A model generated the notes under the pieces. That model ran no database searches. It worked only from the letters and a program-made list of their open reading frames with translations, and had not been told where the DNA came from. From NCBI GenBank assembly GCA_009103225.1, contig RHPI01002438.1, positions 504,637-568,636 of the forward strand: 64,000 bases of DNA, given 5' to 3'. A program made the translations under genes and the position numbers. Shown in pieces: positions 17,285 to 61,800 of this stretch (positions are counted from its first letter, which is position 1; each line of letters opens with the position of its first letter). The DNA comes from Chlorokybus atmophyticus. Taxonomy: Eukaryota; Plantae; Mesostigma and Chlorokybus algae.

Positions 17285-19659
17285 ATGACGCGTGCAGCAG
17301 TAGCGCCCAGCATAAGCTTGGCGCTACTGCTGTGTCTGAGCTTATATGCCAGTCATTGCGCTGCTGCGCTCCCTTTACAAAGGCGCCGGCTTCTCCAGTC
17401 AGGTAGTGTTGGTCTGCCAAATGTGTCAGCAACTGCGGAATCTTCGAGTTGGGTTTGTGTTGACTTCTGTCGTGTAATTGCAAAAACTGTGCAGATTCAT
17501 CCAGCGTGACAGTCGCAGCTTTCTATGATCCTCCTTTCATCAACTTGCTGCCCACCGATCTGGCGGGCACCACCGATAATGGCCAGACTGGAATTGTGGC
17601 ATCAGCTGACCTCCGCGACCACGCCTTGTAAGTGCACTGTTGTTGCACAAGGATTGTGTGCAACCTTCATGCCATTGTCATGTTCAACTTCATTGCTGAC
17701 TGTGTGCATAGGGCGATGCCAAAATTCGGGTATGCTCTGGCCTTGTTTGATCTCGTTGCGCTGCGTTCCAACATGCCCTACCTATTCAACATGACTGGTA
17801 AGTCCTCAATAAACACTCTCAGCTGCTATAGTAAAGTTCATAAATAGAAACTGTTTGCAGTTGGAGTAGTTGACAATGAGTTGTCTGTGTTTGCCAGGTC
17901 AGGGCATGTCGGATGTCTGTCAGTATGTTGGCGAGACGACAAGTGATCTCGTAAGTAGACGCATACGCAATGCAGCGGCGGCGGTTTTCTGTATTGTGTT
18001 TATGCTTATGTGCTCATTGTGCAGCGAGTGGCGCTGGTGCCACTTCCGCGGCTGGCAGATGTTGATTATGTAAACCCCTGCGATCACGACCTTGATCTGA
18101 AGGTAGTGCACCTGCGTTCTTAAGTGAGCTTCATCATGATGTCTATGCACGCACTTGGATGTGAACGCAGATTTGCGAGCATGCTTGCACTGTGCGCTCA
18201 TTGGGGTTGCTATCTAACACCTCTCAAGTGGTAATTCTGCAGAGAATCCCTATGTACGAGTCTGGAATGGTGATGATGGTGCGGTTGGCGTCGTTTGAGG
18301 AGACTCAGGTATGCGCATGTTTATATGTTGGTGGCTTGTATGCAACTTGTAGAGCTGCTGTCATAGGTTGAACGTACCAAAAAGCACACAACAAAATGTT
18401 GCGCTTGTTTGCTGCAGACGTCTCCAGGCGCAGCCTTCTTGCATGCGCTGAAGCAGCCGAGCTCCATCAACGCTATGTGCGTGTTCGTGATCGGTATCAT
18501 CCTATCGGGCCACGTGATGTGGATGCTGGAGCGCAACAGCAACAGCGAGACCTTCCCTAAGCCATACCTTGAGGGCCTGGATGACTCGTGCTGGTGGTCG
18601 GCACAGACGGTTACCACGGTGGGTTATGGAGACAAGGTCCCCATCACCCTTCTCGGCCGCGTGTTTGCGTTCGTGTGGGCCGTGGCGGGCCTCTTCATCA
18701 TCGTGTTCTTCACGGGAACCATCACGTCGGAGATGACGCTCAGTCGCAAGGGTGCCGAGCTGCAGGGGCTGGCGGACATCACGTCGGGTACCAACGTGGG
18801 CGTGATGTCCAACTGGATGGACGCCACGTCCGCCGTCATTGGCGGCATCGGCGCCAACCTCATCGCATGCGGCAGCGGCAACGACATTACGTCTTGCGCG
18901 GACATGCTCAAGAAGAAGCAGGTTCAGGTGGTCATCGGGGACTACCCAACGGTTGTGAACTTCGTGTCCAACACTGTCGGCAATAACGGCGAGTATGACA
19001 TCATTGGAGACGTGTTCAACGAGGGCAATGTGTACGACTACAACATCGTAGTTAACGTCAATGCGCCAGGCGGTGCCGATCTTTACGATAAACTGCTCTC
19101 CACGCTTGAATCTGTTGAAGGAGGCGGCAGCTATGATCGCATCACCTCGCATTATTTTGGGGATGCTCGTCGCAAGGCCCTTGCTGCGCAGCGCACGTCC
19201 ACAGTCCTCAGCCTCAGCTCCCGCGAGAACTCGTACAACTGGTGGCTGATTGTCATCACCCTGTCCGTGTTCTTGTTCTTCATCCTGCTCAACATCTACA
19301 CGTGGGCACGCGAAGCTCAGCGAACAGGCGAAATCCATCTGCCCAGGTGAGAGACACATATGTTCCTTACATCTGTGACATTGATCAGCTTATGGCGCGT
19401 CAATGTATGTCGTGATGCACACGGCACAAGTGTTGTCCGTTAGATTTCGCAGACCAACAGGGTATTGTGTTGCAGACTTGGGCGGTGGATTCTGCGGCGT
19501 CTAGACACCTTCCATGGACGCAAGTGGGTGTTGGAACCCGTGCCCGAGAACATCCCGTTAGAGAGCGCTCGCAGCCGGTTGCGGGGGCCTTCCGATCCGG
19601 ATTCGTGCGCTCCCAATGGGCAGATTGTCAACTCTGCTCCCAGCCATACCTTATTGTAG
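17285..19659 (+). CDS. GluR0-like ligand-gated K+ channel (signal peptide, split S1/S2 binding domain, M1-P(TVGYGD)-M3, extra C-terminal TM)
   Basis: Signal peptide MTRAAVAPSISLALLLCLSLYASHCAAA, several small GT-AG exons, then a large exon with VMWMLERNSNSETFPKPYLEGLDDSCWWSAQTVTTVGYGDKVPITLLGRVFAFVW...FFTGTITSEMT (TTVGYGD at 18613-18633). An S2-like region and TM WWLIVITLSVFLFFILLNIYTW (from 19240) follow. Last exon tentative. Confidence 0.85.
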
Positions 19660-23032: not shown

Positions 23033-23041
23033 NNNNNNNNN

Positions 23042-24341: not shown

Positions 24342-27300
24342 ATGCTGGCGGTTGCGGGTGTGACGGCGGCGGCGGGAGCTCTGGCGGGGGAAAAGAGGCT
24401 CAGGGTGGCTCGGGATGGGGGAGAGGCCGAGCACCTCGAGGAGGAGGATGCGGAGCAGCAGGCTGGCTCGGAGGATGAGATGATGGGCAGCTGCCCGCGC
24501 TTATCAGATCAGGAGGAGTATGAGGCCATTGATAAGGACCTCGCCTGCCCTATTTGCATGGGCGAGATGCGAGACGCATTCATGACGTCATGCGGCCACA
24601 GCTTCTGCTATGGTTGCATTGTGCAGCATTTGAAATCCCGCTCCAACTGCCCCTGTTGCGCGCAATTTATTTCGCAAGACCATTTGTTCCCAAACTTCTT
24701 GCTCAACAAGGTATTGCATTTTAACATGTGTGATACACTGGAATAGGATGTTGCAAGCTTATACCCACTAAGTCTATGCCTGTTGTGCATTCAATAAGTG
24801 CGGACAAGGTTGCTTTTCGTGGGTGCCAGCAGCATTGTGCACATCCTTCAACTTTGTATGCTGTATGTCTAACAGTTGTTGAAGAAGACAAAACTATCAA
24901 GTGGTGGCTCGAAGGCGCTGTCCCCGGCGCAACAGCTCCGGCACGCCTTGGCCTCAGTGCGTCCTTTATTACAACTGCTGCTGGCCTACCGTGTGCTTTT
25001 GTGGGATGCTTATTCTGTGCCTACTCAGGGATCGGATATCTCTTCCGATGAGATTGAGGCGCTGGTTGGTCTGCTGCAGGAGCGAAGAAAAGTCATGGAG
25101 GTCAGCAAATGGACCCTGAAGTTGTTTGCTTGCTTGCTTGATAGCTTGCTGTGTGCAATGCATGCTGAAAGTGTCCTGAAGTTGCTGTGCTCGTGCTCTT
25201 TCTGCTCCGGTGGCTATATTTGCATGATGTGCATTGTGGACACAGGACGCAGTGGCTTTCTGCATTTGCCAGCATGTTGTGCACAGCTGCACACCTACAT
25301 TGAGTGCACACGAACAGTCTGGTATGCTCGTTGCGCCTGAGCACTTGAGGATGTGTTATCCTGCACACAGTGGTTGTATGCCTTGCTTTCTCTCTTCTCG
25401 AGTTACTAACGATCAGGCTACACAGGCGCAAGATGCTGAGAGCTCCCTTGATTTGGTGATGGACTTCATGCAACGCTCGCGAGCGCACAAAGCGCAGTTG
25501 CTGGCAGAGGTAACACTACATGGATGATTACGAGCACGCTACTAACACATCAGCACAGTCTCCTTACACAACCTAATTGTGTCTGCAGCTGCGCGCTGAT
25601 CTAGACTGCTTAGAGATTGACCTCAGAGCCATTTCTTGCAATCAAGCATCAACCACTGCGCCTGCCACCTCCGATCAGCAGTCTTTTCCACATTCCAGCA
25701 GTCTTGTACAGAGCAACCTGCTTTTTTCAGTCCCTCCCAGCCCAAAAGCATCACAGCCGGTTTCTGGTGTCAGGTGGCCCGGGTCACAGAGCGCTTCCAA
25801 AACAGCTCACAGCAACTGGGGGGCGGTAAGTCCTGTCCTCCAGTCCAGAAAGCACACACCCATACCAGCAATACCAGCTCCTACAAACCGCTCTATGGAC
25901 TCGGCTACTGTAGCAAAGAAGCGGCGAGTATTTTCGCAGTTTGAGGATTTGCAGCAGGCCTACTTGAGGGCCAGACGCAGGCGGCGTGCAGCTGAACCAA
26001 CTGTAGCGAGTAGAGGCGTAGATCAGGGATGGCCTGATGTTGGCGGTGCTGAGCCTGGCAGCTTGGTAGGCCCACATACCACAGTACGCATTGATGCAAG
26101 TGCCGGTGCACCTGCTGCAACAGATGCAACTGGACTAGCAGAGTTCCGGCGGACACTTGCAGCAGTCACGCGGTATGGGCGAATGCAGGTCATGGCAGAG
26201 TTGAGACACAACGACCTCTTTCATTCCAACATTGTGTCGAGTATAGAGTTTGACAAGGATGACGAGCTGTTCGCAACAGCTGGAGTTTCGAAACGGATAA
26301 AGGTGTTTGACTTTGCCTCCCTCGTTGGGGACTGCCAGAGTCAAACCCCCGTCACAGAGATTTCCTGCAGAAGCAAACTCTCATGTCTAAGCTGGAATAA
26401 AGCTGAGAAGACGCACTTAGCAAGCTCTGACTATGAAGGCGTGGTCACACTCTGGGATGTTGCTACCTCACAGGTATGGCGTTCTACTATTATGTGCGCA
26501 TGCCACCATTCTATAGTGAGACAGGATACACATTCAAGATGCACAAAGCTGCTTAGTCCGCTGTACTCTCATAATCCTGGTTGCAAGCACGCTGCGTTAC
26601 TAGGTTCTGATTAGACATGCAGTGCTGTGCAGGTTGCTGATGTGCTGTGGTTTCTGTTGCAGAGTGTCATCGAGTTTGAGGAGCATGAAAAGAGGGTGTG
26701 GAGTGTCGACTTTTCGCGCACGGAACCAAATTTGCTGGTGTCTGGCAGTGATGATGGTAAAGTGAAGGTTTGGTCGGTGAAGCAGGAGAACAGCGTCTTG
26801 AATATTGACACCAAGGCAAACATCTGCTGTGTCAAGTACAACCCAGGCTCTTCGCATCACATAGCTGTGGGTTCTGCTGATCATCACATCCACTCATACG
26901 ACCTTCGCTGCACACGGGAGCCTCTGTATGTGTTTGCTGGTCACCGCAAAGCTGTATCGTATGTGAAGTTCATCAGTAGCACCGAGCTTGCTTCAGCCTC
27001 CACGGATAGCACACTGAGGTTATGGGATGTGCGGGAAAACTACCTGGTAAGTTTTCAACTTGTACTAGCATGTTGCCAAACATGCTAACTGCTGTTGGCC
27101 TGTTTGCTCACAAGTTGGTTGTCATTACAGGTGCGCACGTTGAAAGGCCACACCAATGAGAAGAACTTTGTTGGGTTGGGTGCGAACAGTGACTACATTG
27201 CCTGTGGCAGTGAGACCAACGAGGTCTTTGTGTACTACAAGGCGATGTCCAAGCCAACGTGCACACATCGGTTCCAGTCCAGTTCTGACTCGGATGCGGA

Positions 27301-34950: not shown

Positions 34951-37900
34951 GGCAAACAGGAGAATACAACATACACGCGAGGAGCTCTTGTCGCTAGGAA
35001 AACGGGCAGCTTGCCAGCAGTGTCCACCCGGACTGGACACAAGCATTTTCAAGTAAGTCATGGACCTTGTCACATATGCCTGCCATGAAAGTGTTCCGTA
35101 TGCTGTCCACTTTATCATGCTGGGATGAGCAACACCGTGATTGACAACTGTGGCTGCTGCCGTTGCTACGCGCAGAGAGTTGTCATCACGAGATGCGCAA
35201 GATGTTTGGCTTGGAACTGGGCGAGTGCCTGCCAGGTACGTGCGTGTTGCATAGTGCAGATTAGAGCAGTCCATGTCGCTATTAGGGGAGCGGTCTATTT
35301 GGTCTAGGCGCCCATTCCTCGTTTGTTCCATGGGTCAGTCATTCCCTTTCAGCCCGCTCTCTATATTGTGATGATGACTGAGGCCGATTGAAACGGGCAG
35401 CAGTCGAGGGCTGCTCTCAACTAGTTGAGCTTTGCTTGGGTTGCAAGTCCTGACTATTGTCGTTTTTTTGTTCCGCAGTGAACCCCGTCAGGCGGAAGTT
35501 ATTCCGGCATGGCGACGAAAGGACGTGCCTCGTGAGAATGGAGATGTGGACTCGGTTCTCGCAGGTTACGAGCCACGCTCTTGGGATCGTGAAGCTGGCA
35601 AGGACCGTCCAGTTCTGGGCAGGCCACTCGTCCAAGGGCCGCCGGTTGGCGCACGGGATTTTGACAGCGCAGGCGGCCAAATACGAGTAGCGCAGTTTGG
35701 CAGCCGCAGTTTGTCGAGCAGAGACAGCGGTGAGCAATGCTGGTGATGCCCCTTTTCCTTACTGTACACTTCATCGCTTAAGTGGTATGCTTCATGCACT
35801 TTGCAGTGCAAAGCTATATGCACAAGCTATGTGCATAAGCGTTTGCCAACTCTTAATGGAACTTTATCCATGGTATGTTTGTTGGATGCCAGGAGATTCT
35901 TTGCTGTTCAGCCCTCCAAAGAGCATGCTGTCGTCGTCTCCTGCATCCTTGCGACCACGCTGGGGTCAGGATGAACGGCCAACCATGCGCGCTGTTAACG
36001 GAACCGGTGAATACTCGCCGCCACGAGGGCGTGGAAGGGGAATGCCATTGCGCGCTGAACGCCATTCGGTATGCTCACAATGTAACCATAGACAAGCTGC
36101 GCATGCTCAGTGCTTACGATTGGCCACTGACAGCTGGATGTTCCGCGACGCCCTCGTGTTGATGACGGCCCCGTCGCTTTTGCTGGTAGAGGTGGTCGCC
36201 CGACAATGCCTGGTGCCAGGGTGCCTCGTGATAGTGCGGAACGGGAGTGGGACAGGGATAAGGACCGTTTTGGGCCAAGCAGTTGGGATCAATCACGCGA
36301 GTATGATAGGGACTGGGACCGTGGGGGCTCACACGAGAAGCCAGCATGGAAACCAGAGTGGGACCGTGTTGATGCAGGCTTAGATGGGGCAGCAGAGCAA
36401 TCTGCGCAAAACCGCAAAGGTATTCAAGAGGAAGCTAGAGCTTTAACCAACATCGTGGATGGCAGGCTACAGCTGGGATTGGTTGTTGTCTAACACATCC
36501 TCTCACCAACCTGTTGCACATGGCAGAGGCGTTTGAAGCAGAACTGGCGAGGTATCGAGAACAGGCACACCGTGAACGCAACACAGCATCATCATCAAAG
36601 CCGGACACAGCCAAGCCTGATGATAGAGCAGATGTCAAACAAGCTCAGGCCAGTGCTCCCGTTGAGGTGCGCAAGCCAAATTACATTGACGCATGACCGT
36701 TGCTTACCAACCAGTTGCAGGTGCTGACACTGCTTTTGCAGATCCAGCAGGCAGATACACCTCAGAAACAAAAACAGGAAGATGGTGCTGGCAGTGTCCC
36801 ACAACGTGCTGCCTCGCCGTGGAATGTAGATAAGCTGTTTGACCCGTCGGCAGGTCTTTCTTCACTTCTAGGCATAGGTTCTGGAAGCCCTGCACCAAGC
36901 CAGGTGCGCACAGCATGGATGTTTGCGGAACACGTGTTTAAGCAGGGAAACTGGTTGCTAATTAGCATTGGCGCAGGATGAGACCCGAAGCGCTGACGAA
37001 GTTGACGGGGGCAGCGAAAGTGGACTGTCCAAGTTTGCCCGATGGTTCAAGCAGGATAGTAAGTTGGATTGTGGTGTGAGTTTGCTGGTTGCTACAGTTT
37101 GTCAGGTTGCTGGCCTCTGGCAACCTGCCTGGCGACTTGCACGGACCCCTATGATAGGGTATGACCCTTCTTGTTGCATTGTCAGGTTCAGCAGAGCAGT
37201 CAAGCTCAGCAGCACCTCCTGAAAAGGGCAAGTCAAGGGCATCCCCAGCATTAGAGGTTGCAGTTCCAGCACCCACACAAACTGGACAGTCGCGGCTATT
37301 CGCTCTGTTTCAAAACATGGGAGCCACCAGCGCTTCAGCAACACCTCCAGCCTCCACCACCCCGCCACTACCTGTGGCTGGTGGGAACGTGTTGTCATTG
37401 GATGAGCTGGAACGCTCCCTGTCATCGCAAGCGGACGACAGCCGTGGCAACAAAGCGGGCGCAACACAGCAGCAGTACAGTGAGAGTTTAAGATCGCCTT
37501 CTGGCGGCCTGGCAGAGATGTTTCGCAAGGCGGCGGAAACGCCACCGCCATCACAGGCGGAACAAACAGCCCCGCCAGCTTCATTGCCAGGCGTGCCCGC
37601 AAACTTCAGGACGCTTGATGACATCGAGCGCGACCACTACAAGGAGCAGGACCGCATGCCGGTTGGACCGCCTCAAGCTGCAGGGGCAGCTGCACAGCAT
37701 CTGCTGTCGCTGCTTGCAAGCGCTGGAGCCCGCCAGCAAAGCCCCGCACCTCAGCTCAACCTTCCGCCAGAGCTGACCGGCGCAGCGCCGCTTTCTGCCG
37801 GGCGTGCAGACGAACGCGTTGCTCCTGGCAAGGCAGCGAAAGCACGGGTAGGTTCTGCAGGGGGAAAGGAAGGGCGACCCCAAGCCGCCACGGCCCAGCC

Positions 37901-38840
37901 TAGGAAGGGTTACCCCCAAGGAGGCGACCCGGCATTGTCTGGTGTGGGCTTGGATGCAATGGATGCAAACCTTCTGTCTTCATTTGCTGGCAGCGGACCA
38001 CTGCAAGAGCCACCGCGCGTGCCAAGCAGGCAGAACGAGCGGCCACCGTCACGGTTGACTGCTTACATGGAGCAGCAGTTGCCTGACACGCTCATTCCAG
38101 ATGTATGGCCAGGGAACGGCCGCATGTCCAGTCAGTTTGAGGCGCCGCCGCAGCGAGCTAATGGGCCGCCCCGAGTCTCACCTGCATCGTTCTCAATGGA
38201 TGGGCTTTTCATGCGCGGCAACGAGGTGGTCGACTTTCCTCAGCAGTTCGTGCAGCAAGAGCGCCACAGGCGACGAGCTTCCTTTGACGAGCAGAACCTC
38301 TTCCAGACTGCGGGCTTGCAGGGCTACCAGGCCCCACCTCCAGCTTACGAGGACAAGTTCCAACGTAACAAGTACCCGCAAGATGCTGCTGTACTCAACA
38401 ACCAGTATTCTCACCTCCAGTACCCCAACCCTGCCTATGCACCCTCGGCACAACCTCCTCCCCAGTTCTTTCAAAGCCCCAATGTCCCGCCCATGCGAAG
38501 CGCCAACATGGGCTTCTTCAACGGGCCGGCGCCCCCGCAATACATGCCTCCACAGGCGCAGTACATGCCACCGCCTCCGCCCGTGCACGGCGGGTTCCCC
38601 GGCCAACGCAGCCACCATCAGGGGTTCACGCCTCCACCCTTCGTCCAGCAGCAGCAGCAGGAGCTCGGCTTCAACCCATCCATGCGACAGTTTGGGGTGG
38701 AGAATGCACCGGGCATGGGGCGGCCTCGCCCGGAGTGGTTCGCGGATGGGACGGGACACGGCGGTCCAGCGGGTATGCCGATGCAGATGACGGAAGAGAT
38801 TGAGCGCATGCTGCATGCCGTGCGCCTGCAGCACGGGTAG
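34951..38840 (+). CDS. CBE1/4E-T-like eIF4E-binding protein; true start upstream of 34951 not located
   Basis: Exon RIQHTREELLSLGKRAACQQCPP (variant 4E-binding motif), EYSPPRGRG, SESGLSKFARWF and VLSLDELERSL match motifs recalled from plant CBE1 and metazoan 4E-T. The long P/Q-rich terminal exon ends at 38840. Confidence 0.65.
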
Positions 38841-43961: not shown

Positions 43962-46900
43962 ATGGCCATCGCGGGTACACACTGTTTTGCAGCCACCCTC
44001 TGGTAGTGGATGTGTCGGCAAAAGTCGTCAGTGGAGTGGGAGGGGGTTAGAAGTTAAATCTGCACGCAGGAGAGTTGAGATGGTCGGTTCTGCTTTGGGT
44101 GTGCATGCATGTGCGTGTGTGTATACACCAACCGAACCGTTCATCCACGTACTGTACCCGGCGCTGCCTCGGGAAGCACTACACTAGCTTCCTGTGTTTG
44201 ACACGTCAAGTTGCAGGCCACATTGAGGATAACGGGGGAGGCGGCGCAGCAGGCGGGAGCTCGCTGGCGCCTGTGGTGTGCAGGCTGAGTCTGCTGCGCA
44301 TACAGCAACCAACCAATCAGAGGGTTGGTGCATGTCAGCTGGACATTTACACATAAGCTATGAGGCAGTAGTAGTTTCGGGGCTGGCCATGCAGGCAACT
44401 CGCAAGGTGCCAAGGCGGCTTCCTGCTGCGTCCAACGCTTTGTTCTGCTGGTTGAGCGTTGTTGTCAAGCAACCTCAGGTGGCAGTATGCTGGTCACCAC
44501 GGTGACTGAAGGTGATCATGGACGGGTTGTTGTCTAGAGGAAAAGCGGTGGTAGTCATGTGCCTTCGTGTGCAAGCCACCAGGTGGTTTTCGACGTTAGT
44601 GGTCAGCTTCTGCATGCGTGCTGAAAAGCTTGATTGCTCTGCCAGTGCTGTGACACAGCGTTGCCACGGCAGTGCGACATGTGGCCGTCAACAAAGATCG
44701 CATTCGGTAGTTGAGCGTGTTGCACCTTCTCGGCCAGAAGGTGCCAGTTGTGCAGTCAAGTCACCTGAACACACCCTTACAACGCTGTAGCTAACCTTGT
44801 TACACGTAGCAAAGTTGCCTTCTCTATGGCTGGTTGCTGGTTGCTCTTTGAGCATCATCCTGTGCAGGCAGTATCCAGCTTGAGCTTGTTGCGGCCACGG
44901 GACTTCTGTGCACATCAAGTACTACGCACCTACACTGCAGACAACTTCAACTGGCAATCCACAGCCTTGGAGGCTACTTTGCCACGATGAAGCTAAAAAC
45001 GGCATTGCAGCTGCTGCAGGAGAGACAAGCCCTCCACATTCAGCTGTGTTTTTCAAGATCTGATGACCGAGCAGCGTGAGCAGATAGCTCATTTTGCAAC
45101 GCAAATGCGCGTGATGCTGTTGGAGAGGCAGCGGGAACATAGCGCGAGACTGGAAGAGCGGCTGCAAGCAATGCATGAGCTGGTGCAGGCATCGACTGAA
45201 CAGGGTGACTGCAATGCTCTGCAGGATGCACACAATTACACGCATTGCAAGAAAAACAAGACGAGCTACAGTGGACTTGGCCACCTCTGACGAGCATTTG
45301 CCGCAGAAATCTGCCACGGAGCAGCAGAAGCACAATGCGCAAAGGCTTGTTACCTAAGCTTGTGCAGAGTGTTATACAGTCTGTACGGGAGGAGGGGGCT
45401 CAAGTGAGCGCACTGCAGGAGCTCTCACAACTGCAGAAGCTCAACAACTTACTGAGAAAAAAGCTGCAAGCAGACCTTGGTGCTCAGTTGACTGACCAGC
45501 TGCAAGGCATGCACGCAAAGCAGGTGCAACTGCAGGTCGTCAAGTTCAGGAGGCTGAAGAAGCCAAAAGAGGATCAATTCGCACTTGATTTGTGAGTTTC
45601 AACCCCTGTTTGCACAATATCAAGGGACTGCTCCGAAGCTGTTTTAATGCACTGATGCCGCAATGCGAGTGCACAGGTCCAAGCAAGACAATTACGCTGA
45701 TGTCATCAAGAAGCTGGCTTACAAGCTGAAGGTGCCTGACTCTTCAATAGGCTCACTGCCTATGACTGCCATTGGCATTCACCCAAGCCCAATCCCATCA
45801 AGTATTGCACAGTGGACACGCTCATGGACTGGCTGGTTAAAGACAACCAGGTGTGTTTGCTCCATACGTCAGGACTAGAGCTGCAAACCATGCCTGTCTC
45901 ACATTACGAATGCAAATGTACGTTGGACCCCACCTCGATGTTGTTGGAATACAGACAATAGACATTCTTTACCATGGAGTGACAGATACCCCGCTACCAG
46001 CACTTGTAAACTGGAAGATCTTGACACTGTTTATCGCAAAAATCGGGAGGTTCGTCTTGCTCTGTATGGGTGTTACTGCATGTTCTTCTCGACCAATAAG
46101 CTCTGTGCACTGATTCCATTATCCAACAGAGGCAAGTGCTGAGCATTCGGACACCCGAGATAAGCACCATGGGTGATATCGTTGCTGAGTTGAAAACAAT
46201 GGTCAGTTGTTCATTACTCCGTGTGCACTGCCCAACTTGCAGGGCGTTGATACCGTACAGAGTGTGTGTCACTTCTTGCATTCTTCATGCTGCGGTTTGC
46301 ACCAGATGGACTCCCAGCCGGACACAGAGTTGAGAATTCCACAGATCTGCTGCGGCCAGATCAACAGGGTCTGGCATGAGTTCTCGCCAGTCTAAAGCTG
46401 TGCCGTGAGGTATCTCTTGTGACGTACTAACCCACCGTTGTAGCAGGTGTTCGCACATCATGAAAGAATTGACCACATGTTTTGGACTTTGCACGCGGAA
46501 GAGGTGTGGGCATGACGGCCTTGATGGACCGTAGTAAGGAATTGATGCATTTGCTGCCAACCATTGTGTGATGGTTGGCATGCGCGCCAGATCCCGGAAG
46601 ATGAGAAAACCATGGGCCCCAATGATAGACTGATTCATGTGTGCCACTTCACCAAGGAGGCGCGTACAGACTTGGTGCGTCAAGTGTGACGCACGCTCAT
46701 TGAGTGGCTTACGGTGCAGTCCTGATGGGTTGTGTCCTTTGTCATGCGCGAGCATGTAGTGTCATGTGCATGATGCCCTCGGGGCTGGCGACATGGATGG
46801 ACCTTGGGGTTTTGGCTCTCATAGCCATTTTACAGGGTTTATGTGTTGGGTTTTCATTGAGAACTCATGTTTGGGTCCTCATGGACGTGAGGGAGGTGTG

Positions 46901-49900
46901 TTCGAGGCGTATCTACAGTCAGATACGGAGCTGACAGCATATCTGGGTCACTATGGTATCTCGCACAGCTGTTTCGGAGTTGTGACTTTGAGAAGCCGTA
47001 ACTTACAGTTGGAGTGGCGGTTTGGCCATGGGTTGGCGTAAAAAGATGCGTTCTGAAGTGTACTTGAAGAGGATGAGCTTGGATAAGCCTTTCCTAACTG
47101 TTTACCGTTACTTATCAACGCCACCATGACTGTTACTATGCTGATGCAGATTGACAGTTAGGGTAGTTGGAGAGTTGGTTGGGCTTGAGCTCAACGGTGG
47201 TATATAAGGCTTTGCTAGCCTGTTTCCTAGTTTGGTTGGATGCAAGTTGGCCTACTGGAGTGCAAGCAACACCTTTGGGAAGAGGTTCTTGGCTGAGCGG
47301 ATGCGTGTGCACATGCTTGCATGTATGGCGTGTGTGCACGTGTTCGTTGCTGTGCGTTGCTGTGCATGAAGGGGTGTGTGTCACTGTTGCGACTTTGATG
47401 CACCGTATGGGCTGCCTTAGCATGTACTTTGAGTGAGGATTGAGTTGGGACTGCTTTACACAAGTGAACGGCTGATTGCAAGTCAAGTTGTGGTCTACTT
47501 GCCTACCTTTTGCAAGGGGACACGCATCTTTCACTTGCATCAAATGAGTTGATTCAGCTTCAACCATGGATAGCACACCGAGATTCAGTGGGAGGCCCGG
47601 CACGGCGGACCTACGCGACTTCATCGACCGCTTCGACTCCGAGATGGTCAAGTGGGAGTATCGGGACAAGTCGGGGTGGGACGAGCACAAAGCCTTCAAG
47701 ATGTTGCCTCTATACCTCAAGGATGAAGCCCTTGGCACGTGGAGAGAGTTCAAGGAGCAGCTGGAGGTGAGGGAGAGGGCGTTGCGGCTCGGCGCACCGG
47801 CTGCGTTTGAAGCGGAGTGGAAGAAGGAGCAGCCCGTGACTGAGTTCAAGGCGCTCTTGAGGAAGACCTACCCACAATCAACACCCGCCAAGGTTCGTGA
47901 GCTGAGTTTCTTCAAGCGCAACGCCGGGGAGACGGCGAGGATGATGTATACGCGCATGCTCAAGCTCTTGACGGACACGGACTACAAGGTGATGACGGAT
48001 CAGACCGCGGCGGTTGTGTACCTTCAACAACTAGAGGCGGACTTGAGGCTGAAGGTGGAGACCATGTTGACCACTCAGTCCGAGTTTGGCACATACACGC
48101 TTGCGGATGTCTTCAAGGTGGCCGAGACGGCAGAAATTCAGCATGAGTACCTCAAGAACATTGACCGACAGCGTCGGGGGTTGAAGTTGCTTGAGATTTC
48201 GGAGGAGAAGAGCTCTTCCAAGCCCGCGGCAACATCGGCGGCAAGCAAGGCAGCTGGTGGGAAGCCAAAGGAGTTCAAGCATGCCAACAACGCGGTTGTG
48301 GAAGGTGTGTCGGGTGCCAAATGCTGGTCGTGTGGAGAGCAAGGCCATATTGCAAGGGATTGTGGGAAAGGCAAGAAGGTGGTGTGCTCTCATTGCAAGA
48401 AGGGTGGGCATGTTGATGCCAAGTGTTGGAGTAAGCATCCAGAGCTGCGTCCACAACAAGGAGCGGCAGTCGGAGCTCACTCGAGTGTGAGAGCGGAGCC
48501 ATCAATGTCGGAGGTGACAAAGGCATTGGCGGCAATGCAATCGGAGTATGCATCGTTGAAGAGCATGCTCGAGCGAGGGAAATGGCCCGAGAGAGGAGCG
48601 GAGGATAAGCCAAGCAGCTCCGGAGGTTACCTCGCGTATAGTGCGCTCTCCGGAGGCACTAAGGTGGCAGCGGTTGCGACGACGAGAGCGTCGGCACGCC
48701 GAAACGCTGCACCAGCTCCCCCGACTAGGATGGTTGAGGAGGAGGCCGCGCCCGTCCGCGAGGAGGGTGTGGATCATGATAGGATGCGGGCACCAGCTGC
48801 ACGCATGCCTATGTCATTTAAGTTGCTGCCAACAACCCCGTTGGAGCAAGAGAGTTCGCGCTCGGAGGGTGCGAAAGTGCAGCCGACTGCTACGGCAACG
48901 GCGCGACATGATGTCGGCGTCGGTGGCGGTGGTGAGCACAAGAGAGTGGGGGAGCTGCTACAGATGTGTGTAAAGCTTCTCGAGGGTGCCAAGATGCTTT
49001 CCCAACAGCCCGCAACTCAAGCCAATGAAGAAAACTTGGAGTTGACGGCGCCGTTGGAGAGCGTTGCGGCGGAGCTGGTCGGGCAGCCGCTTGTTTGCTT
49101 GAAGGACCTTGGAGTCAGCAAGGAACACGTGATGGAGCTGTTGCAAAGTGCTCTAGACACCACTAGGACTGCCTCGACAAAGTCTCATGACCATATGAGC
49201 AAGTCTCATGAAGATATGGTGGCGCAAGCAGGCCGTATGGTTGCGCGCGCGGAGCTGGCGGCGCCCGAGGGGTCCGCGTCGGCGTCGAGTTCTCTCACTC
49301 AGCTTGAAGACAAGCTGGAGGAAGGTGTGGGGAGTGTAGGAGGGATGTTGGCAATGCTTCCCGCCACTCGGCCGGCCTTGAGAGAGAAGATATCGCCGAA
49401 TGTGGCGATGGTGGACAACCGTGGGGGGCACATCAGCCTAGACGGCTTCGTGCCAGATGTTGTCTTGGTGGATACAGGTGCACAACCTGTCATTTTGGGT
49501 GCTAGAGCTGTCAAGGGGATGGGACTCAGCCCCAAGGAGTGGGAGCCATGCCCGGTCATGATCAATACCTCGGCGGGGACCGTAGAGGCCGTGTGCGGCA
49601 TAACGGTGCAGCCGGTGGACATATGCTTGACTGCGGTGGGAGGTGCTACCACGTCCTTCAAGGTTCGATGCCTCATCACGGATGCAAAGGGGTACGATGT
49701 GCTGCTCGGACAAGACTTCTTGTTCCCCGTCGGCGGCGGCGTTGACAATTGGATCGAACAAGGGTTCTTTCGGCCGCGTTGGCGTGTGGGTGGAGGGGAG
49801 AAGGCCTATTTTCCGTTGAGCATCACACAAGGGGGTCTTGAGAGGTCTCCAACCTCTGCATCTGCTGTGTGGGCGTGCTTGAGTCGCCGTTCAGTCAAGG

Positions 49901-52900
49901 GATGGCTTGGTGACAGCACCGACATGTACTATGACCATGTGGAGGAGGGGGAGAGTGTCCTCGCACACATGGAGGAGGGGAGACCTCCGGAGCTGGTCTA
50001 TATGGCGCAAACTCAGTCACAAGAGCTGGAGTTGGCTTCACAACATCGTGCTCAGCGGCAACAAGAGGCTCAAGACAAGGTTAGCCAAGCATGGATGAAG
50101 GATGTGATGGCATTGGAGCCGCCATTGCTGCCCGAGGGTGTGAGAGCTGTTCATCCGCCTATCAACTACAGCACCGTCGAGTGGAAGGTCCCCGAGGAGG
50201 GTGTTGTGATGGTGGAGCTGTTCGGTGGCATTGCAAGTGGGCTTGCGGCCGCGTTGAACGCCGGCATCAAGGTGCGGCGCTATATCTATGTGGACCCTTC
50301 GCCAACGGCGCAACAAGGTGCACAACATCATGTGAGGATGTTGTTGAAGAAGTATCCAGATCTGCTACATGAGGATGCGGTGAAGGGCTTTCAAAGCACA
50401 TGGCCGCAAGACATTTGTTTGATAGGGCCACATCAACTTGCAGCTATCGGCCATGTGCATTTGCTTGTAGCCGGGTGGGAATGCCAAGGGCATTCACGGG
50501 CTGGTCATGGCAAAGGATTGATGGATGCGCGCTCGTCATTGTTTTGGGAGTTAGTGCGCATCATCAACAGGATTCAGCAAGGACAAGAGCAGCCCATGGC
50601 GTACATCGTCGAGAATGTACCAGCTGAAGATGACAAGCGCAAGCGCGTGCGAGAAGACTATCAGCTGGTGAGACATGTGCTAGGCCATGAGCTGGTCATG
50701 GATGCAGCACGGCATGGTTCGCGCGCGCATCGGCTGCGTGTGAAGTGGACAAACCTCGCGCCGGTTGAGTTGCTTCGCACGGTGCAGCAAGAGTACTCTA
50801 GACCGCAAGGTTTGACAGTCAACCAGGTGCTGGAGCATGGGCGCACAGCACAACAGGTCAGCAAGGCTGATCGGCCGCCTCAAGAGGTGGTGAACCAGGT
50901 CGGGCACGACATGGCGGCGCTGCCGACATTGGTGACATACCCAGGCTCTTATGCATTCCGCAAGGGAGGGCCAGGGCTGGTGTGGGACTCACAGAACAGC
51001 AGGTTGGAAGAGCCAACAGCTGGTGAGCGCGAGCGTGCGATGGGGTTCTTGTCCGGTGCGACAGCGGCGCCGGGACTAAGTGAACAACAGCGCCGTGTGC
51101 TGCTAGGACAAGCCATGGACCAGAACAGCATGGTGTGGCTGATGGTTGTCTGCTTGGCGGCACAAGAGTTGGTGGCAAGCATCATGCCGATGCGACAGCA
51201 AGCGCGTCGGGAGCCTGCGCCTCTGTCGAGGGGGTGGGAGCAGGTTGTACATGATGAGGAGAGTAAGGGGGTGTCTTTTTCGCCTGTGACAGCTGCAAGT
51301 GGCAAGAAAGCGGCTGTAGATGGTGCCTTGAAGCAGGAGAAGGCCACCGACCAGACCATGGAGTGGTGTATAGGCGAGCATGTGACACCACATGAGCGTG
51401 AGTGGCTCGAGGCGTTGCTGGCGCGCAAGCGTGACTGCTTCGCCTACTCTACCAAGGAGTTGGGAGTTTGCAACTTCTACACAATGGACATTGAGTTGAC
51501 CTCTCCAGAGCCCATCTTTCGTCGGCAGTATCGGCTGAGCAAGGTGGAGAAGGAGTTTGTGGCAGAAAAGTGTGCTGACTTGTTGGAGGCCGGACTCATT
51601 GAGGAGTCAACCTCGGACTTCGCGGCGGCGACGGTGTTGCCGTTGAAGAAAGATGCACAAGGAAACTGGACCTCGAGAAGGATGTGTGGTGACTATCGGC
51701 CTCTCAATGAGAAGACCAAGGCTGATCGGTACCCCATGCCTATCCCTGAGGCTATCTTTGATGACATCGGTGATGCAAAGGTGTTCTCCATCGTGGACTT
51801 GAGGCAGGGCTTCAACCAGATCGCCATCAAGCCCGAGGATCGTGGCAAGACAGCGTTTTGGGGAGTGGACCAGCTCTACCAATGGAAGGTCATGCCGTTC
51901 GGCTTGAAGAATGCGCCTGTGAAGTTTCAGCGTGTGATGGACCGTGTGCTTCGTGGTCTACCCTTCGCAAGGTGCTACATAGATGACATCTTGGTGTTTA
52001 GCCACACGATGGAGGAGCATCTCGTGCACTTGGAGCGCGTGTTCGAGCGCGTGCGCGAGAGCGGCATGAGGTGTCACCCGGAGAAGTGCTTGTTTGGAGC
52101 TGATCGCATCCCGTATCTCGGCCATGAGATAGTGCCGGATGGCGTCCGTGTGCAGCAAGCAAAGGTGGATGCCTTGGTGCAAGTGCCCGCACCGACGGAC
52201 ATTAGCCGGCTTCGAGCGTTTCTCGGCTTGGCGAACTACTATCGGAGGTTCGTGGAGGGGTATAGCAAGATTGCAAAGCCCTTAAATGAGTTGTTGAAGA
52301 AGGACAAGGCCTGGTGCTGGTCGGAGGAGTGCCAACGTGCCTTTGAGCTTCTCAAGGAGAAGCTATGCACCGCGCCGGTGTTGAGACGGGCGGACTACAA
52401 CCGTCCCTTCATCCTACACACGGATTGGAGCCGTTTGGGCATTGGGGCCGTGTTGTGTCAAAAGGATGATGATGGGAAGGAGTATGTGGTCGCGTATGGC
52501 AGCCGAAGCAACAATAACGCTGAGGCAAACTACAGCTCCTATGAGGGGGAGTGTTTGGCAGTAGTTTGGGCCATAGTTCACTTCAGACCGTTCCTCTATG
52601 GCCGTCCCTTCACACTCATCACCGACCACCAGCCCTTGAAGTGGTTGATGACCAATGACAAGCTCACGGGGAAGCATGCCAGGTGGGCGCTCATACTGCA
52701 AGAGTATGAGTTTGAGATTGAGCACCGAGCTGGTGTTGACAACATGGACGCGGATGGGCTGAGTAGGAACCCAAACCCTTCATCGTTGGATGAGAGTGAG
52801 GCGAGGCATGACTATGGCATGCCCGTGGCTGGGTTTTTGGCCTACCGTGTGGCTTCTTTGCTGGTGTTGGCGGGTTCGGTGGAAGCATGCGCATCCATGC

Positions 52901-55900
52901 GCGCAAACGCAGCTGGAGAGAGCGACAACAATGGTGTAATGCCGCCTTTGGAGGCTGCACCAGCCCCAACGGTCAATGACATTGAAGGGGAGGAAGCCGA
53001 GGCTTCAAAGGACATTTGGAGGGATGAGCAAGTGCTTGCTCACCTCAAAACCGGGCTGTTCCAAGCTGGTTGCAGCACGGCGACGCGAGATCGCGTGTGG
53101 CAACGCGCGCAACGCTATCGATGGGAGGGAAACCACCTTGTGCGCTTGATGCCGGATGGAGGTGTGAGGATTGTGCCTCAACCACATGAGAGGAAGCCGC
53201 TTGTGGAGCTGCTTCATGAGAGGATGGGCCACTTTGGTGTCAAGAGGACACTTGGGCTCGTGCAATCAGCATATTGGTGGGCTGGCATGAAGTCTACCGT
53301 GGCGGAAGTTGTTGCAAGCTGTGTGGAGTGCGACAGAGTGAAGGCAAGCTTCAATGCCAAGCACCCACAGCTGCACCCTCTACCTATTCAAGGACTTTTC
53401 TATCGGTGGAGCCTAGACCTGGCCGGAGATCTACCAGTCAGCAAGAGAGGCAACCGCTACGTGCTCGTGATGATAGAGCACTTCTCCAAGTGGGTCGAGG
53501 TCGTGGCGCTGCCATCGAAGGAGAGCAAGCTTGTGGCTGAGGCTTTCCTTGATCAAGTCCTTAGCAGATTCGGTGCTTGTGCTGAGGTTCTCACTGACCA
53601 AGGCACCGAGTTTCGTGGCCAGTTCGATGACTTGTTGGCGCAAGCCTTTATCGACCATCGAAGGACTTCTCGTGACCATCCTCAAGCCGATGGGCTTGCT
53701 GAGCGAATGGTACAAGTGGTGAAGAAAGGGCTTCGCAAGTACTTTCTCAACCACAACAAGAGAGACTGGGACTTGGCGTTGCCATGGTTGGCAATGGGCT
53801 ATCGCATGACGCGGCAGGCTGCGTTGAGCTCATACAGCCCCTATTTTTTGTTGTATGGGAGAGAGCCCATATTGCCAACATCAATCCGGAGACAGGTTGA
53901 GCAGGAGCTTGACTTGGAGGATCCCAATGTGTGGGAGAAGGAGATGGCAAAGCGTGCGGAGCTGTTCCGGTGTGTGATGCCGATTGCACTTGGCAACTTG
54001 CAAGTGGCACAACACCGCGACACGCTGCGCTATGCCAGGGTGAGGAGTGGCTTCTACAAGCCAAGACTGCAGAAGTTTCAGCCCGGAGACTTTGTCTACC
54101 TGCAGAGAAAGACCAAGGACACGTTGGATACGAGTGCGAGCCGCACCATCCTTCGTGTGAAGAAGCTTCTCAACAACGGTGTGTTGTTGTTAGAGGGAGC
54201 TGATGCCAGGACCACTAAGGAGCACATGAAGAGCTGCGCTCCTTGCCATCTGCCAAACGTGGATGACAGTGTGGATCCGGCTCTGGCAATACCAGATGTG
54301 GGCCACCGTTGTGAGCGGTGTGGCCGAGCGGAAGGCTGGGACACCATGCTGCTGTGCGACAGGTGTGTTGCCGGTTGGCACATGGAGTGCCTTCGTCCAC
54401 CAGTTGAGGAGATCCCTGATGGGACATGGTATTGTCCAGCGTGTACGAGGACTTGAGTAGCGTGTGAGTCAGCTGAAGGCGCACGAGGGCGTTGGCGCTC
54501 AGCTGCAGGGGGTGGTGACACGCATCTTTCATGCGTGTGTCAACTTCATGTGATGAGAGATGGTGCATGAGGCAGCATGACATGGTCTCATGGTGTATAA
54601 TAGCATGCGTACATGCATGGCAAGGAGGTTTACGATGAGTTCGAGTCACGATGCGGGAAGGCACGACAGCTGTCATGCGCGAGCATGTAGTGTCATGTGC
54701 ATGATGCCCTCGGGGCTGGCGACATGGATGGACCTTGGGGTTTTGGCTCTCATAGCCATTTTACAGGGTTTATGTGTTGGGTTTTCATTGGGAACTCATG
54801 TTTGGGTCCTCATGGACGTGAGGGAGGTGTGTTCGAGGCGTATCTACAGTCAGATACGGAGCTGACAGCATATTTGGGTCACTATGGTATCTCGCACAGC
54901 TGTTTCGGAGTTGTGACTTTGAGAAGCCGTAACTTACAGTTGGAGTGGCGGTTTGGCCATGGGTTGGCGTCAAAAGATGCGTCTTGAAGTGTACTTGAAG
55001 AGGATGAGCTTGGATAAGCCTTTCCTAACTGTTTACCGTTACTTATCAACGCCACCATGACTGTTACTATGCTGATGCAGATTGACAGTTAGGGTAGTTG
55101 GAGAGTTGGTTGGGCTTGAGCTCAACGGTGGTATATAAGGCTTTGCTAGCCTGTTTCCTAGTTTGGTTGGATGCAAGTTGGCCTACTGGAGTGCAAGCAA
55201 CACCTTTGGGAAGAGGTTCTTGGCTGAGCGGATGCGTGTGCACATGCTTGCATGTATGGCGTGTGTGCACGTGTTCGTTGCTGTGCGTTGCTGTGCATGA
55301 AGGGGTGTGTGTCACTGTTGCGACTTTGATGCACCGTATGGGCTGCCTTAGCATGTACTTTGAGTGAGGATTGAGTTGGGACTGCTTTACACAAGTGAAC
55401 GGCTGATTGCAAGTCAAGTTGTGGTCTACTTGCCTACCTTTTGCAAGGGGACACGCATCTTTCATGCGTGTGTCAACTTCATGTGATGAGAGATGGTGCA
55501 TGAGGCAGCATGACATGGTCTCATGGTGTATAATAGCATGCGTACATGCATGGCAAGGAGGTTTACGATGAGTTCGAGTCACGATGCGGGAAGGCACGAC
55601 ACCTTCGCAGGCTCTCACTTATGGAGATCTATTCTTGTTGTGTGTTCATAAGAATGAGACAGTGGCGGAAGTCAGAGAACGAGTACAGGCCAAGCTTGGC
55701 GTCCCTGCAAAGGTGTTGCAGGTTTTGTTTGTTGGAAGCCAGTCGCTTTATATTGTTTGCCAGTTGATGTTGTTCACAGGCTTCCGACTTGCACAACTGA
55801 ATAGTGTTGCGCAGTACCAGATGGCCTTCGTCAATTATTACACCTTTGAAGTAGCAGAGTTTGAAAACGATTGTGATCTTGTGGCAGCAAAGTTCCAAGC

Positions 55901-58892: not shown

Positions 58893-61800
58893 TCAATAAT
58901 CATCAACATCATGGTGTTGGGGTTTGGTAATAGAGCCATAGTATGGCCTTACCGAAGGCATGATCTCGTTAATCTTGATAGCTAAGAACTCCGCGTCTTC
59001 TGGCCCATTGGTTTTGATAGCAACCATTGTGTCTATTTGCGCTGCCTGCTTGTGAAGGCATCATTGATGTAAGCACGTGTGCAAATCAGTCATGCAGCAG
59101 CTAACAGCGTACAAAGGCAGGCGTGCACTCGCGTGCGTGTGCGTGCGTCAAAGGCAGACATGGAAGCGAGAGCAATGCCACGCACCGCTGTAAATAGATG
59201 TGTCACGAGTGAACTATTGTTCACTTGAAGCTTCATGCCCGTGTACACAGCAGCATCCAGTAACACTTCCCCAACCTGCACAGAGCAACAACCATGGGAT
59301 CAAAGGGGAGCCACACTGGCAATTATTGCGCATGAACCAAGCTGTTTGCAAGACTTCGATGTAAGCATGCAACATCGGTGTGTGGCAGTTTACAAAGCCG
59401 TTGTTTGTTGGCTGGAGAAAGCTTGCCTTGAACTCTGTGCTTGGGCGCAACAAGCTCTCATATGCGCATTGATGCAGTGGAATTGATGGTATGCAACCAC
59501 TGCAAACTCACGTGGTTGTGGAACACGAATCGGGGTCTTTCTTCTGATAGCTCCGTGTCTTCTAGCTTCCGTAGAGACAGCTGGCCCATGCCGCCGATAT
59601 CCTTCCACGCACCATCAACCATGGCGTAGATTCTACACCTGACAGAATGCGTGACCTCCTCCTCGTCCGCGCCGGTCTCATCCACAGATGAAGACGACAG
59701 CTCTGGCTCCTCCTCTTCTTCTGTGGAAGCAGAACACGTGTGACCTCATGCATTGCGCAGCACCTCTTGGTGAAAACATAGGCAGAGACAGCCCTGTCAT
59801 AAACGTGCAACCGGAAAAGGTACTTGTTGTGTACTTGTGTGCATACAACCTGCTGGGTACTTGAGCACGACCAAAAGTTACCACCATGCGCACACGAATA
59901 CCAGTGCATGTACAGACCACAGGCGACAAACCTTGACGGGTGTCTGTTGCAGATGGTGCGTTTATCGGTGCTGCGCCACCTGATGAGTGGACCATGTTAA
60001 CCGCTGTGCCTCCATATACATGCTTACTGCAGTCATGCGCCTCACCATTTACTGACTGCCTGCTGTCGGTAGGTGGTGCAGCAGTGGGTGCATCGCGCTC
60101 GGCTGCGCCAAATAACGTGGCACGCATCTCGCCTGCGAGTCTGAGGTAATGCCTCACGGCAGCGACCCACAACTCGTTGATGTTCTCCCGGGCAATCCAC
60201 CTGGGCATGTTGTACGTAAAGGCTGCTGAGAGACACGCGTTCTAAAGCAGACGCGCAAGCTCTGAGACTGAGTGACTGCAACCAAACTCACGATCGGAAA
60301 TCATTGTTTAACGCCCGGACAGACAACAGCAGCACTGCCTGCCGTTCCGCACTACGTAGAGATGGAGACGGCTGCCCTTCCTCCTCATCTTCTGTGCAAG
60401 TAGAACACGTGTCATGCATTGCAAAGCAACTCCCAATGAGAATAGGCAGAAACAGCTTTGTGGTAAGCGTGCATCTGAGCAAGGTACTTGNNNNNNNNNN
60501 NNNNNNNNNNNNNNNNNNNNNNNNNNNNNNNNNNNNNNNNNNNNNNNNNNNNNNNNNNNNNNNNNNNNNNNNNNNNNNNNNNNNNNNNNNNNNNNNNNNN
60601 NNNNNNNNNNNNNNNNNNNNNNNNNNNNNNNNNNNNNNNNNNNNNNNNNNNNNNNNNNNNNNNNNNNNNNNNNNNNNNNNNNNNNNNNNNNNNNNNNNNN
60701 NNNNNNNNNNNNNNNNNNNNNNNNNNNNNNNNNNNNNNNNNNNNNNNNNNNNNNNNNNNNNNNNNNNNNNNNNNNNNNNNNNNNNNNNNNNNNNNNNNNN
60801 NNNNNNNNNNNNNNNNNNNNNNNNNNNNNNNNNGGGTACATGTGCATGCAACTGCATCAATATTTGAGCAGTACACAAATGAGCCAGGACCACGCCCACA
60901 CGCATACCAACAGGTGTAAACACCAAAGCGTTATGGCGGCCACAAACGCGACTGGCTCACCGTTCCCGTTTACTGACTGATTGCTGTTGGCAGGTGGCGC
61001 AGCAGCGGATGGATCGCGCTCGGCTGCGCCATGCAATGTGGTGAGCGTGTTTGCGTGTCTGAGGTAGTTCCTCGCGCCGGCAATCCACAACTCGTCGGCG
61101 TTTGCAATGGCAACCCACCTGTTCGTATGGTCACTTAAGCTTGCTGAGAGACACAGTCTGCAGGACACACACGCGCACGCGCACGCACGCGCTCGTGCGC
61201 GCGCTGAAACCGAGCACTCACTCTTGGAATTCTGTATTGAGCTTTTGGACAAGCCACTGCAGCAACGCCTGCTGCTCCGGCGTCGCGTGCGTTGGTGTTG
61301 GTTGAGCAGTCTCTGCCATTGCTGGCACACGCAATGGCCCCTGCATGCGCAAAACAGGCAGTGCTGAATTGAGTCTCTAAATGTGTGCCTATGCTACTCA
61401 GTCCACAGATGACTTCTGTTGGGCAGTGCTAAAGCTCAACAGCTTTCAGATGCACCCTTGTAGTGCATGGTTGTACGAATACCAGCCTGAGGAGTGAAGG
61501 CACCAACAGCAAGGCGCTGGGCACTGCTGGACGATCAGTATGCAATACTCGTGTGACTACTGCTTGCACTGCAAAACCACTTCGGCACCAACTGCACCAG
61601 CAGGGTGTCTGTGCTTTGGAGCAAGAGGAGTACAAAGCCTAGACTGCACTAGGTAGTAGGACGTATTGCCGTGCCAGTTGCAGGCCATCAGCTTGACTGG
61701 ACCACGTGCTTGACACATGGGGAGTGGACGTACAAGTGAACTGAACTGTTACCCATCAGCGAACGAGTGGACGAGACACGTAGGCCGCACGAAGTGAACT

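Follow-up and report, generated by a model that had tools for sequence, protein, structure and literature searches.

Split, permuted terminal repeats in a Ty3/gypsy retrotransposon clade of the green lineage: a proposed route through cDNA-end fusion and palindrome cleavage

The window analysed here is a stretch of 64,000 nucleotides from the alga Chlorokybus atmophyticus (contig RHPI01002438.1, positions 504,637 to 568,636 of the forward strand), and the subject of this study is a retrotransposon at 46740-55601 of it, hereafter the window element. In textbook accounts, long terminal repeat (LTR) elements are integrated by the blunt ends that result from reverse transcription, and split direct repeats are usually taken as the signature of tyrosine-recombinase elements. 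The clade to which the window element belongs combines a split, permuted repeat layout with a normal DDE integrase and target-site duplications, which raises the question of how such copies are made and inserted. Comparison of the window element with its relatives suggests that, relative to the LTR made by reverse transcription, the integrase uses circularly permuted ends, as would result from fusion of the cDNA ends together with cleavage of a palindrome inside the LTR. We give this reading a probability of roughly 0.55.

Repeat layout, coding content and occurrence among relatives

The repeats of the window element are arranged in the order A-ORF-B-GC-A-B (ORF, open reading frame), with CCTT on either side. 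The two A copies (A1 and A2, 794 bp) differ by 5 mismatches, the two B copies (B1 and B2, 152 bp) are identical, and a check of all four repeat boundaries showed that no further extension is possible. The final 15 nt of A are also the initial 15 nt of B (GACACGCATCTTTCA), giving an overlap of A2 and B2 at 55450-55464, and exactly two bases, GC (54669-54670), lie between B1 and A2. The termini of the element are TGTCATG...CACGACA. A preliminary description of this DNA had given the same layout; its repeat coordinates proved exact, and CCTT on both sides was confirmed by repeat comparison. Runs of N are found in the window only at 23033-23041 and 60491-60833; therefore, no assembly gap lies in or beside the element. 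No further copies of A, B or the interior were detected within the 64-kb window. All features are listed in Table 1.

Pfam matches within the single polyprotein followed the order protease, reverse transcriptase (RT), RNase H (RH) and integrase (IN), as in Ty3/gypsy elements, with RT and RNase H of the gypsy type. The integrase has an N-terminal zinc domain and a DD35E core, the residues D1951, D2011 and E2046, with spacings of 60 and 35 residues, being invariant across 16 aligned sequences. A short target duplication and TG...CA ends (TGTC...GACA) are also typical of this group, as are a primer-binding site at the 5′ repeat and a polypurine tract at the start of the 3′ LTR; yet in this element the two priming signals appear to delimit a unit B-NN-A (NN being the two-nucleotide spacer) and not the integrated terminal units. 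Two complete identical LTRs around the interior are lacking in the window element and in at least 22 relatives. Of the features that mark the DIRS order, the element has the split direct repeats, but neither a tyrosine recombinase nor an absence of target duplication; no match to the recombinase family (PF00589) was found in the polyprotein and the 7 largest other ORFs inside the element. The preliminary reading of a gypsy-type element with DDE integrase, split repeats and a 4-bp duplication is thus upheld, the DD35E residues being invariant, although it had overlooked the methyltransferase, the PHD finger and the apparent self-priming character of the primer site described below.

The PHD finger, at the position of the chromodomain of chromoviruses, was present in nearly all clade members returned by protein searches. 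The C5 cytosine DNA methyltransferase lies between protease and RT in the window element and also in P0001 and P0009 (P-numbers denote proteins from the protein searches). Its place is between RNase H and integrase in P0013 and, judging from the alignment consensus, also in many further members, which would make two insertion positions within one clade. Its catalytic motif reads GWECQ in the window element versus GWPCQ in the clade consensus, the cysteine being retained and the proline lost (about 50590-50625, residues about 1010-1020). The window element is an intact, recently inserted and probably active member of a green-lineage Ty3/gypsy clade.

The protein searches returned a large clade with the order RT-RH-IN-PHD, often including the methyltransferase. 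Named hosts were Klebsormidium nitens, Closterium, the liverworts Calypogeia and Riccia, Haematococcus, volvocine algae and Tetraselmis. The closest protein matches to the window polyprotein were at most 59-62% identical, and matches at 57-62% included Calypogeia fissa. DNA of relatives was obtained from one metagenome scan, which returned 80 loci (L-numbers) with 34-57% protein identity to the window element. Repeat order was determined by self-comparison of the loci and by searching them with reference A and B pieces, and in the census of loci the same insertion assembled from different samples was collapsed by eye via identical flanks.

The complete order A-ORF-B-A-B was found in 10 distinct metagenomic loci and a partial form of it in about 9 further distinct loci; the closer relatives L002 and L029 had the same 3′ arrangement. 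Because the order recurs in this way, the split layout appears to be a trait of the lineage and not a single event. According to the preliminary description, B+A at both ends of other family copies would have made the window copy a one-off rearrangement; on checking, the relatives were found to share the split order. That the window holds a single copy could also raise suspicion of an artefact, for instance an assembly error, insertion in nested or tandem fashion, or local rearrangement of an element with an ordinary A.B or B-GC-A LTR. Other assemblies contain at least 22 independent insertions with this order and with the same termini, spacer length and 4-bp duplications; moreover, the sequence of the window element has no gaps inside or next to it, and its ORF is intact. 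This explanation can hardly be credited.

Six loci (L001, L017, L032, L033, L024/L025 and L057/L058) consisted of A-ORF-B only, with ample 3′ flank present, and L032 and L033 retained three of the four duplication bases. A B-NN-A junction upstream of the ORF in L077 was rejected as a chance resemblance at the start of A1, there being no B sequence at that place. L029 is a 9171-bp contig with identical first and last 123 bp (1-123 and 9049-9171) that assembles as a circle, and L002 apparently runs from A2 back into the leader; collapse of the identical A1 and A2 by the assembler is the most likely cause, an extrachromosomal circle being a lesser possibility. In L007, L014 and L066, an unrelated pair of 155-bp direct repeats, 595 bp apart, occurs some 7.5 kb further downstream (in L007, about 13199-13948) and may be part of another split-repeat element.

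Integrated ends, priming signals and the A2.B2 joint

The start of A (TGTCATGCC...) and the end of B (...ACGTCACGACA) are conserved throughout the clade. Perfect 4-bp duplications flank 6 of the 11 complete copies (window element, CCTT; L010, CCAC; L018, TTTA; L021, ATGT; L054, CCAT; L062, ATCA), three others match at 3 of 4 positions (L014, L072 and L075), and two show no match (L056 and L059). Inside the elements, the sequence CACGACA-NN-TGTCATG, with a fixed 2-nt spacer, was observed at the B1-A2 boundary in 30 metagenomic loci, always 3′ of the ORF. This B1-NN-A2 stretch is a replica of both integrated ends placed tip to tip, resembling an LTR-LTR circle junction, and neither it nor the outer ends ever shift register among copies. 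Across the 30 loci, CACGACA is often replaced by CATGACA or CACAACA, and the spacer varies (GC, GT, AC, AT, AA or TC) with the flanking heptamers kept (e.g., L014, 17304-17305). The spacers GC, GT, AC and AT would fit C-to-T decay of an ancestral CAGCTG, which would extend the core palindrome to as much as 16 bp; a non-templated origin of the spacer was set aside since this decay fits better. The pattern of C-to-T decay at CG and CAG/CTG sites is noteworthy in that the elements carry their own cytosine methyltransferase.

A run of G residues lies directly ahead of B1 in every copy compared. There is no TGG after A1, so that a tRNA 3′ end could not pair with the primer site. Instead, in the window element, in L002 and in the L014 group, the primer-binding site can pair with a stretch of A located 26-38 nt past a TATA box. 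In the window element, GATGCAAGT (47239) pairs with ACTTGCATC (47533) over 9 nt; in L002, the pairing is between A+174 and A+362 over 16 nt; and in the L014 group, the primer-binding site is AATTCTAGAAAAACT, its partner site in A varies, and pairing of 10-16 nt was found in 13 of 19 copies, in most of which none of 300 shuffles attained the observed length. Three unrelated pairing sequences in the same geometry would amount to covariation and suggest self-priming like that described for Tf1 and Tj1 (PMC4600332). The pairing predicted for the window element takes its weight from its position and from the parallel in relatives.

With the G-run before B1 and the primer site after A1, the priming signals would delimit the reverse-transcribed LTR as B-NN-A. 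The same placement, B+GC+A, had been proposed in the preliminary description from the polypurine tract and primer-binding site of the window copy, and is now supported by the G-run and self-primer site in relatives as well. The meaning seen there in the TG...CA ends of this unit was not sustained: they are a coincidence of the window copy, because the corresponding unit in relatives has the ends ATACA...CAAT, and it is the integrated element whose TG...CA ends are conserved. An ordinary A.B LTR with a truncated 5′ copy was also considered and rejected, as purine-rich sequence is missing before A2, primer sites are missing after all B copies, and such an LTR would leave the G-run ahead of B1 unaccounted for.

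In terms of reverse transcription, the A2.B2 joint is the end of U5 fused to the start of U3. The joint was exact (CAAT/ATACATG) in about 8 copies and off by indels of 1-5 nt in about 6 (L004, L016, L069, L072, L075 and L076); in the window element it is formed by the 15-nt redundancy common to both cDNA ends. Large deletions with one edge exactly at the joint were found in L010, where B2 is cut to its last 29 bp, and in L060, where A2 is cut to 72 bp, and L062 has a deletion across the joint with a 4-nt microhomology. B2 of L054 starts 137 nt upstream of the usual G-run, after a pseudo-polypurine tract (GGTGG/ATAC); this extension is 81.6% identical, compared with 82.6-85.4% for the other repeats of the copy, and since it has diverged as much as these, it was present from the time of insertion. 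Between A2 and B2 of L059 lie the primer site, about 36 nt of leader and 3 filler bases. Both copies are as expected of a joint that unites the cDNA termini of each cycle, whichever these happen to be: the plus strand would have started aberrantly in L054 and the minus strand in L059. From these copy-specific indels, deletions and extensions, the A2.B2 joint appears to be made anew at each insertion.

These observations also bear on a route like that of DIRS elements, by which a near full-length transcript from A1 to B2 would be copied, the internal B1-NN-A2 would template the missing ends, and the integrase would open the restored junction in the tyrosine recombinase's stead. Such a route would account for a repeat order that is also that of PAT and Ngaro elements, and for B1-NN-A2 being an exact tip-to-tip replica of the integrated ends. 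Under this route, however, neither the conserved G-run abutting B1 nor the self-complementary primer site at the edge of A1 would have a function. In addition, it predicts an A2.B2 joint inherited through the RNA, whereas extensions from alternative priming sites (L054 and L059) and deletions edged at the joint were seen. As no tyrosine recombinase was found and target duplications are present, we regard this route as quite improbable.

A proposed order of events

The layout, termini, target duplications, priming signals and heterogeneity of the joint are clade-wide features. Fusion of cDNA ends with palindrome cleavage would connect them as follows. Transcription would start about 35 nt past the TATA box in A1 and end in A2, and the first 9-16 nt of the mRNA would fold onto the primer-binding site after A1 and prime the minus strand, as in Tf1. 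The G-run ahead of B1 would prime the plus strand, giving LTRs of the form B-NN-A and a cDNA of the form B-NN-A-interior-B-NN-A. The ends of this cDNA would not be substrates for the integrase, which would act instead at CACGACA-NN-TGTCATG inside the LTR. The A end of the cDNA would be joined to its B start, either through a template switch by which the plus strand, completed last, forms a circle, aided in the window copy by the 15-nt terminal redundancy, or by end joining. If the palindrome of the 5′ LTR is cut and the ends so made are inserted, the product would be A-ORF-B-NN-A.B flanked by a 4-bp duplication. Timing could account for the use of this LTR only: the minus strand would complete the 5′ LTR early, making it double-stranded first, and the plus strand would finish last and then switch from the A end to the B start. 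Alternatively, engagement of the 5′ LTR site by the integrase might come first and joining of the ends second. Of these steps, we infer the internal cleavage of the palindrome, the mode of end joining and the exclusive use of the 5′ LTR.

The two-LTR circle of the preliminary description leads to another version. Ligation would turn the cDNA into a free circle of this kind, a palindrome of which is then opened by the integrase, and the opening in the 5′ LTR would have occurred here by chance. The topology fits, the A2.B2 joints (blunt, with small indels, or with deletions) resemble the junctions of two-LTR circles, and cleavage of the palindromic LTR-LTR junctions of such circles by retroviral integrases is documented (PMC1180852, PMC1905944, PMC4372172). 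A free circle would, however, offer two identical sites, and the mirror order A.B-NN-A-ORF-B would be expected in about half of the insertions, persisting as dead copies. This order was found in none of 19 loci having 5′ flank (binomial probability about 2e-6), which favours an ordered process over random opening of a free two-LTR circle and makes the latter unlikely. Thus, what stands of the proposal is that the integrated copy is a circular permutation of the B+GC+A form, with a joint of cDNA end to cDNA end at A2.B2; the free circle is not supported, and the ordered step was missing from the proposal.

Several points weigh against fusion of cDNA ends with palindrome cleavage. The window element is the sole copy from its source genome that was compared, and its self-primer pairing is only 9 nt long, with a second complementarity of 10 nt elsewhere in A. 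Most of the metagenomic copies compared are old (82-94% identity between their own repeats), and some of the variation at the joint may therefore postdate insertion. The transcription start, the poly(A) site and the integrase cleavage are all deduced from sequence. The loci with A-ORF-B only fit later recombination between B1 and B2, but could also represent insertions in which both palindromes were cut. Finally, the internal B1-NN-A2 copy of the proposed cleavage site stays uncut in every element, and its survival is not fully explained by the proposed model. Whether fusion of the cDNA termini, cutting of the built-in palindrome of the first-completed LTR and a fixed circular permutation would form an obligatory route for the whole clade in green algae and bryophytes appears evenly balanced.

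Insertion site, related systems and significance

Table 1. Features of the window element and its target-site duplications (positions in the 64,000-nt window)
Feature	Position	Strand	Basis or remark
Left target-site duplication, CCTT	46736-46739	+	Identical to 55602-55605
A1, 5′ terminal repeat, 794 bp	46740-47533	+	Begins with the conserved integrase end TGTCATG; promoter and R-U5 part of the putative reverse-transcribed LTR
TATA box (GGTATATAAGG) within A1	47199-47209	+	Upstream of the self-primer; in relatives, the distance between the two is 31-36 nt
Predicted mRNA 5′ end/self-primer (GATGCAAGT)	47239-47247	+	38 nt past the TATA box; complementary to the primer-binding site
Putative primer-binding site (ACTTGCATC) at the A1 boundary	47533-47541	+	Complementary to GATGCAAGT
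Polyprotein, single uninterrupted ORF, 2296 amino acids (aa)	47566-54456	+	ORF reading
gag zinc knuckle (CCHC)	48319-48363	+	PF00098, aa 252-266
Aspartic protease	49462-49722	+	PF13975 and PF13650, aa 633-719
C5 cytosine DNA methyltransferase, between protease and RT	50410-50640	+	PF00145, E = 6e-9, aa 949-1025; Pfam-matched part only, the full domain being larger
Reverse transcriptase	51667-52131	+	PF00078, aa 1368-1522
Gypsy-type RNase H	52318-52707	+	PF17917 and PF17919, aa 1585-1714
Integrase, H2C2 zinc domain and DDE core (D1951, D2011, E2046)	53182-53682	+	PF17921 and PF00665
C-terminal PHD finger	54310-54444	+	PF00628
Putative polypurine tract (AGGGGGTGG)	54507-54515	+	One base ahead of B1; in relatives, G5-G9 immediately before B1
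B1, internal B copy	54517-54668	+	5′ part of U3, putative start of the reverse-transcribed LTR
Near-palindrome CACGACA-GC-TGTCATG over B1, GC spacer and A2	54662-54677	.	Proposed integrase recognition/cleavage site
A2, second A copy	54671-55464	+	Repeat comparison
A2.B2 joint, 15-nt stretch common to the end of A and the start of B	55450-55464	+	Would be the right cDNA end fused to the left end via terminal redundancy
B2, terminal B copy	55450-55601	+	Finishes with the conserved integrase end CACGACA
Right target-site duplication, CCTT	55602-55605	+	Identical to 46736-46739

Translations of the flanks (...GPNDRLIHVCHFTKE on the left, 46590-46665; ...LFLLCVHKNETVAEVRERVQAKLGVP on the right, 55611-55720) resemble what we take to be the C-terminal part of a USP7/UBP12-type deubiquitinase. 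The element is oriented as these deubiquitinase-like pieces are, and its CCTT target lies 5 nt before an apparent intron acceptor (cag/G). Elsewhere in the window, exon-like ORFs at 5976-6809, 18409-19350 and 25577-26614 gave NMD3, ion-channel and WD40 matches, indicating that the window is eukaryotic nuclear DNA. For a 559-aa ORF at 37161-38840, Pfam gave no match, and a large protein collection contained no homologue at E <= 1e-5. GC skew was positive across most of the window.

A literature search for split repeats together with a gypsy integrase returned one paper only, PMC5890265 (de Mendoza et al. 2018), and a classification of plant LTR elements (PMC6317226) does not include the clade. 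In the legend to Fig. 4c of PMC5890265, the gypsy-Dnmt3 element of Klebsormidium nitens is given a DIRS-like repeat structure with gypsy domains; termini, duplications, priming sites and a mechanism are not given there for KnitGypsy-Dnmt3. The replication route had been called possibly undescribed in the preliminary description, which holds for the mechanism; the layout is already in print. Like the window element, KnitGypsy-Dnmt3 has a gypsy polyprotein with a C5 DNA methyltransferase and DIRS-like repeats, and as K. nitens proteins are among the protein-search matches, the two clearly appear to belong to the same broad clade. The K. nitens proteins are only 43-49% identical to the window RT-IN region, which makes the window element another family.

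PAT-like elements, Ngaro and TOC1/TOC3 share with the window element the order A1-internal-B1-A2-B2 and the internal replica of the end junction. They encode a tyrosine recombinase and lack target duplications, whereas the window element has a DDE integrase, no recombinase, 4-bp duplications, and a primer-binding site and polypurine tract of the LTR type; TOC1 has been treated as a non-autonomous DIRS element (PMC9940879). Elements of the Tf1/sushi group (Tf1, Tj1 and the plant Tcn1) resemble it in the primer site complementary to the 5′ end of their own mRNA, which is predicted here, and in the single gag-pol ORF. Unlike it, Tf1-type elements have two whole LTRs and a chromodomain in place of permuted LTRs and a PHD finger. 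In foamy virus and HIV-1, the palindromic ...CA-NN-TG... of LTR ends placed tip to tip is likewise a cleavage site for a DDE integrase and can serve integration (PMC1180852, PMC1905944, PMC4372172). There, cleavage of the circle junction is a side route acting on a by-product, whereas each LTR of the clade studied here contains the palindrome as an integral part, and the route would apparently be obligatory.

Programs that search for LTR elements by a pair of whole LTRs will overlook such elements or set their limits wrongly. The presence of a cytosine methyltransferase and a PHD finger in the same elements is of relevance to the epigenetic conflict between transposon and host. If the proposed route is true, an integrase can routinely act on a palindrome inside the LTR, the joining of cDNA ends can be productive and need not be a dead end, and a DIRS-like layout can arise without a recombinase. 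The clade would then be a natural case of cleavage of an LTR-LTR-type junction as the main pathway, and a functional bridge between LTR elements and DIRS-type elements.

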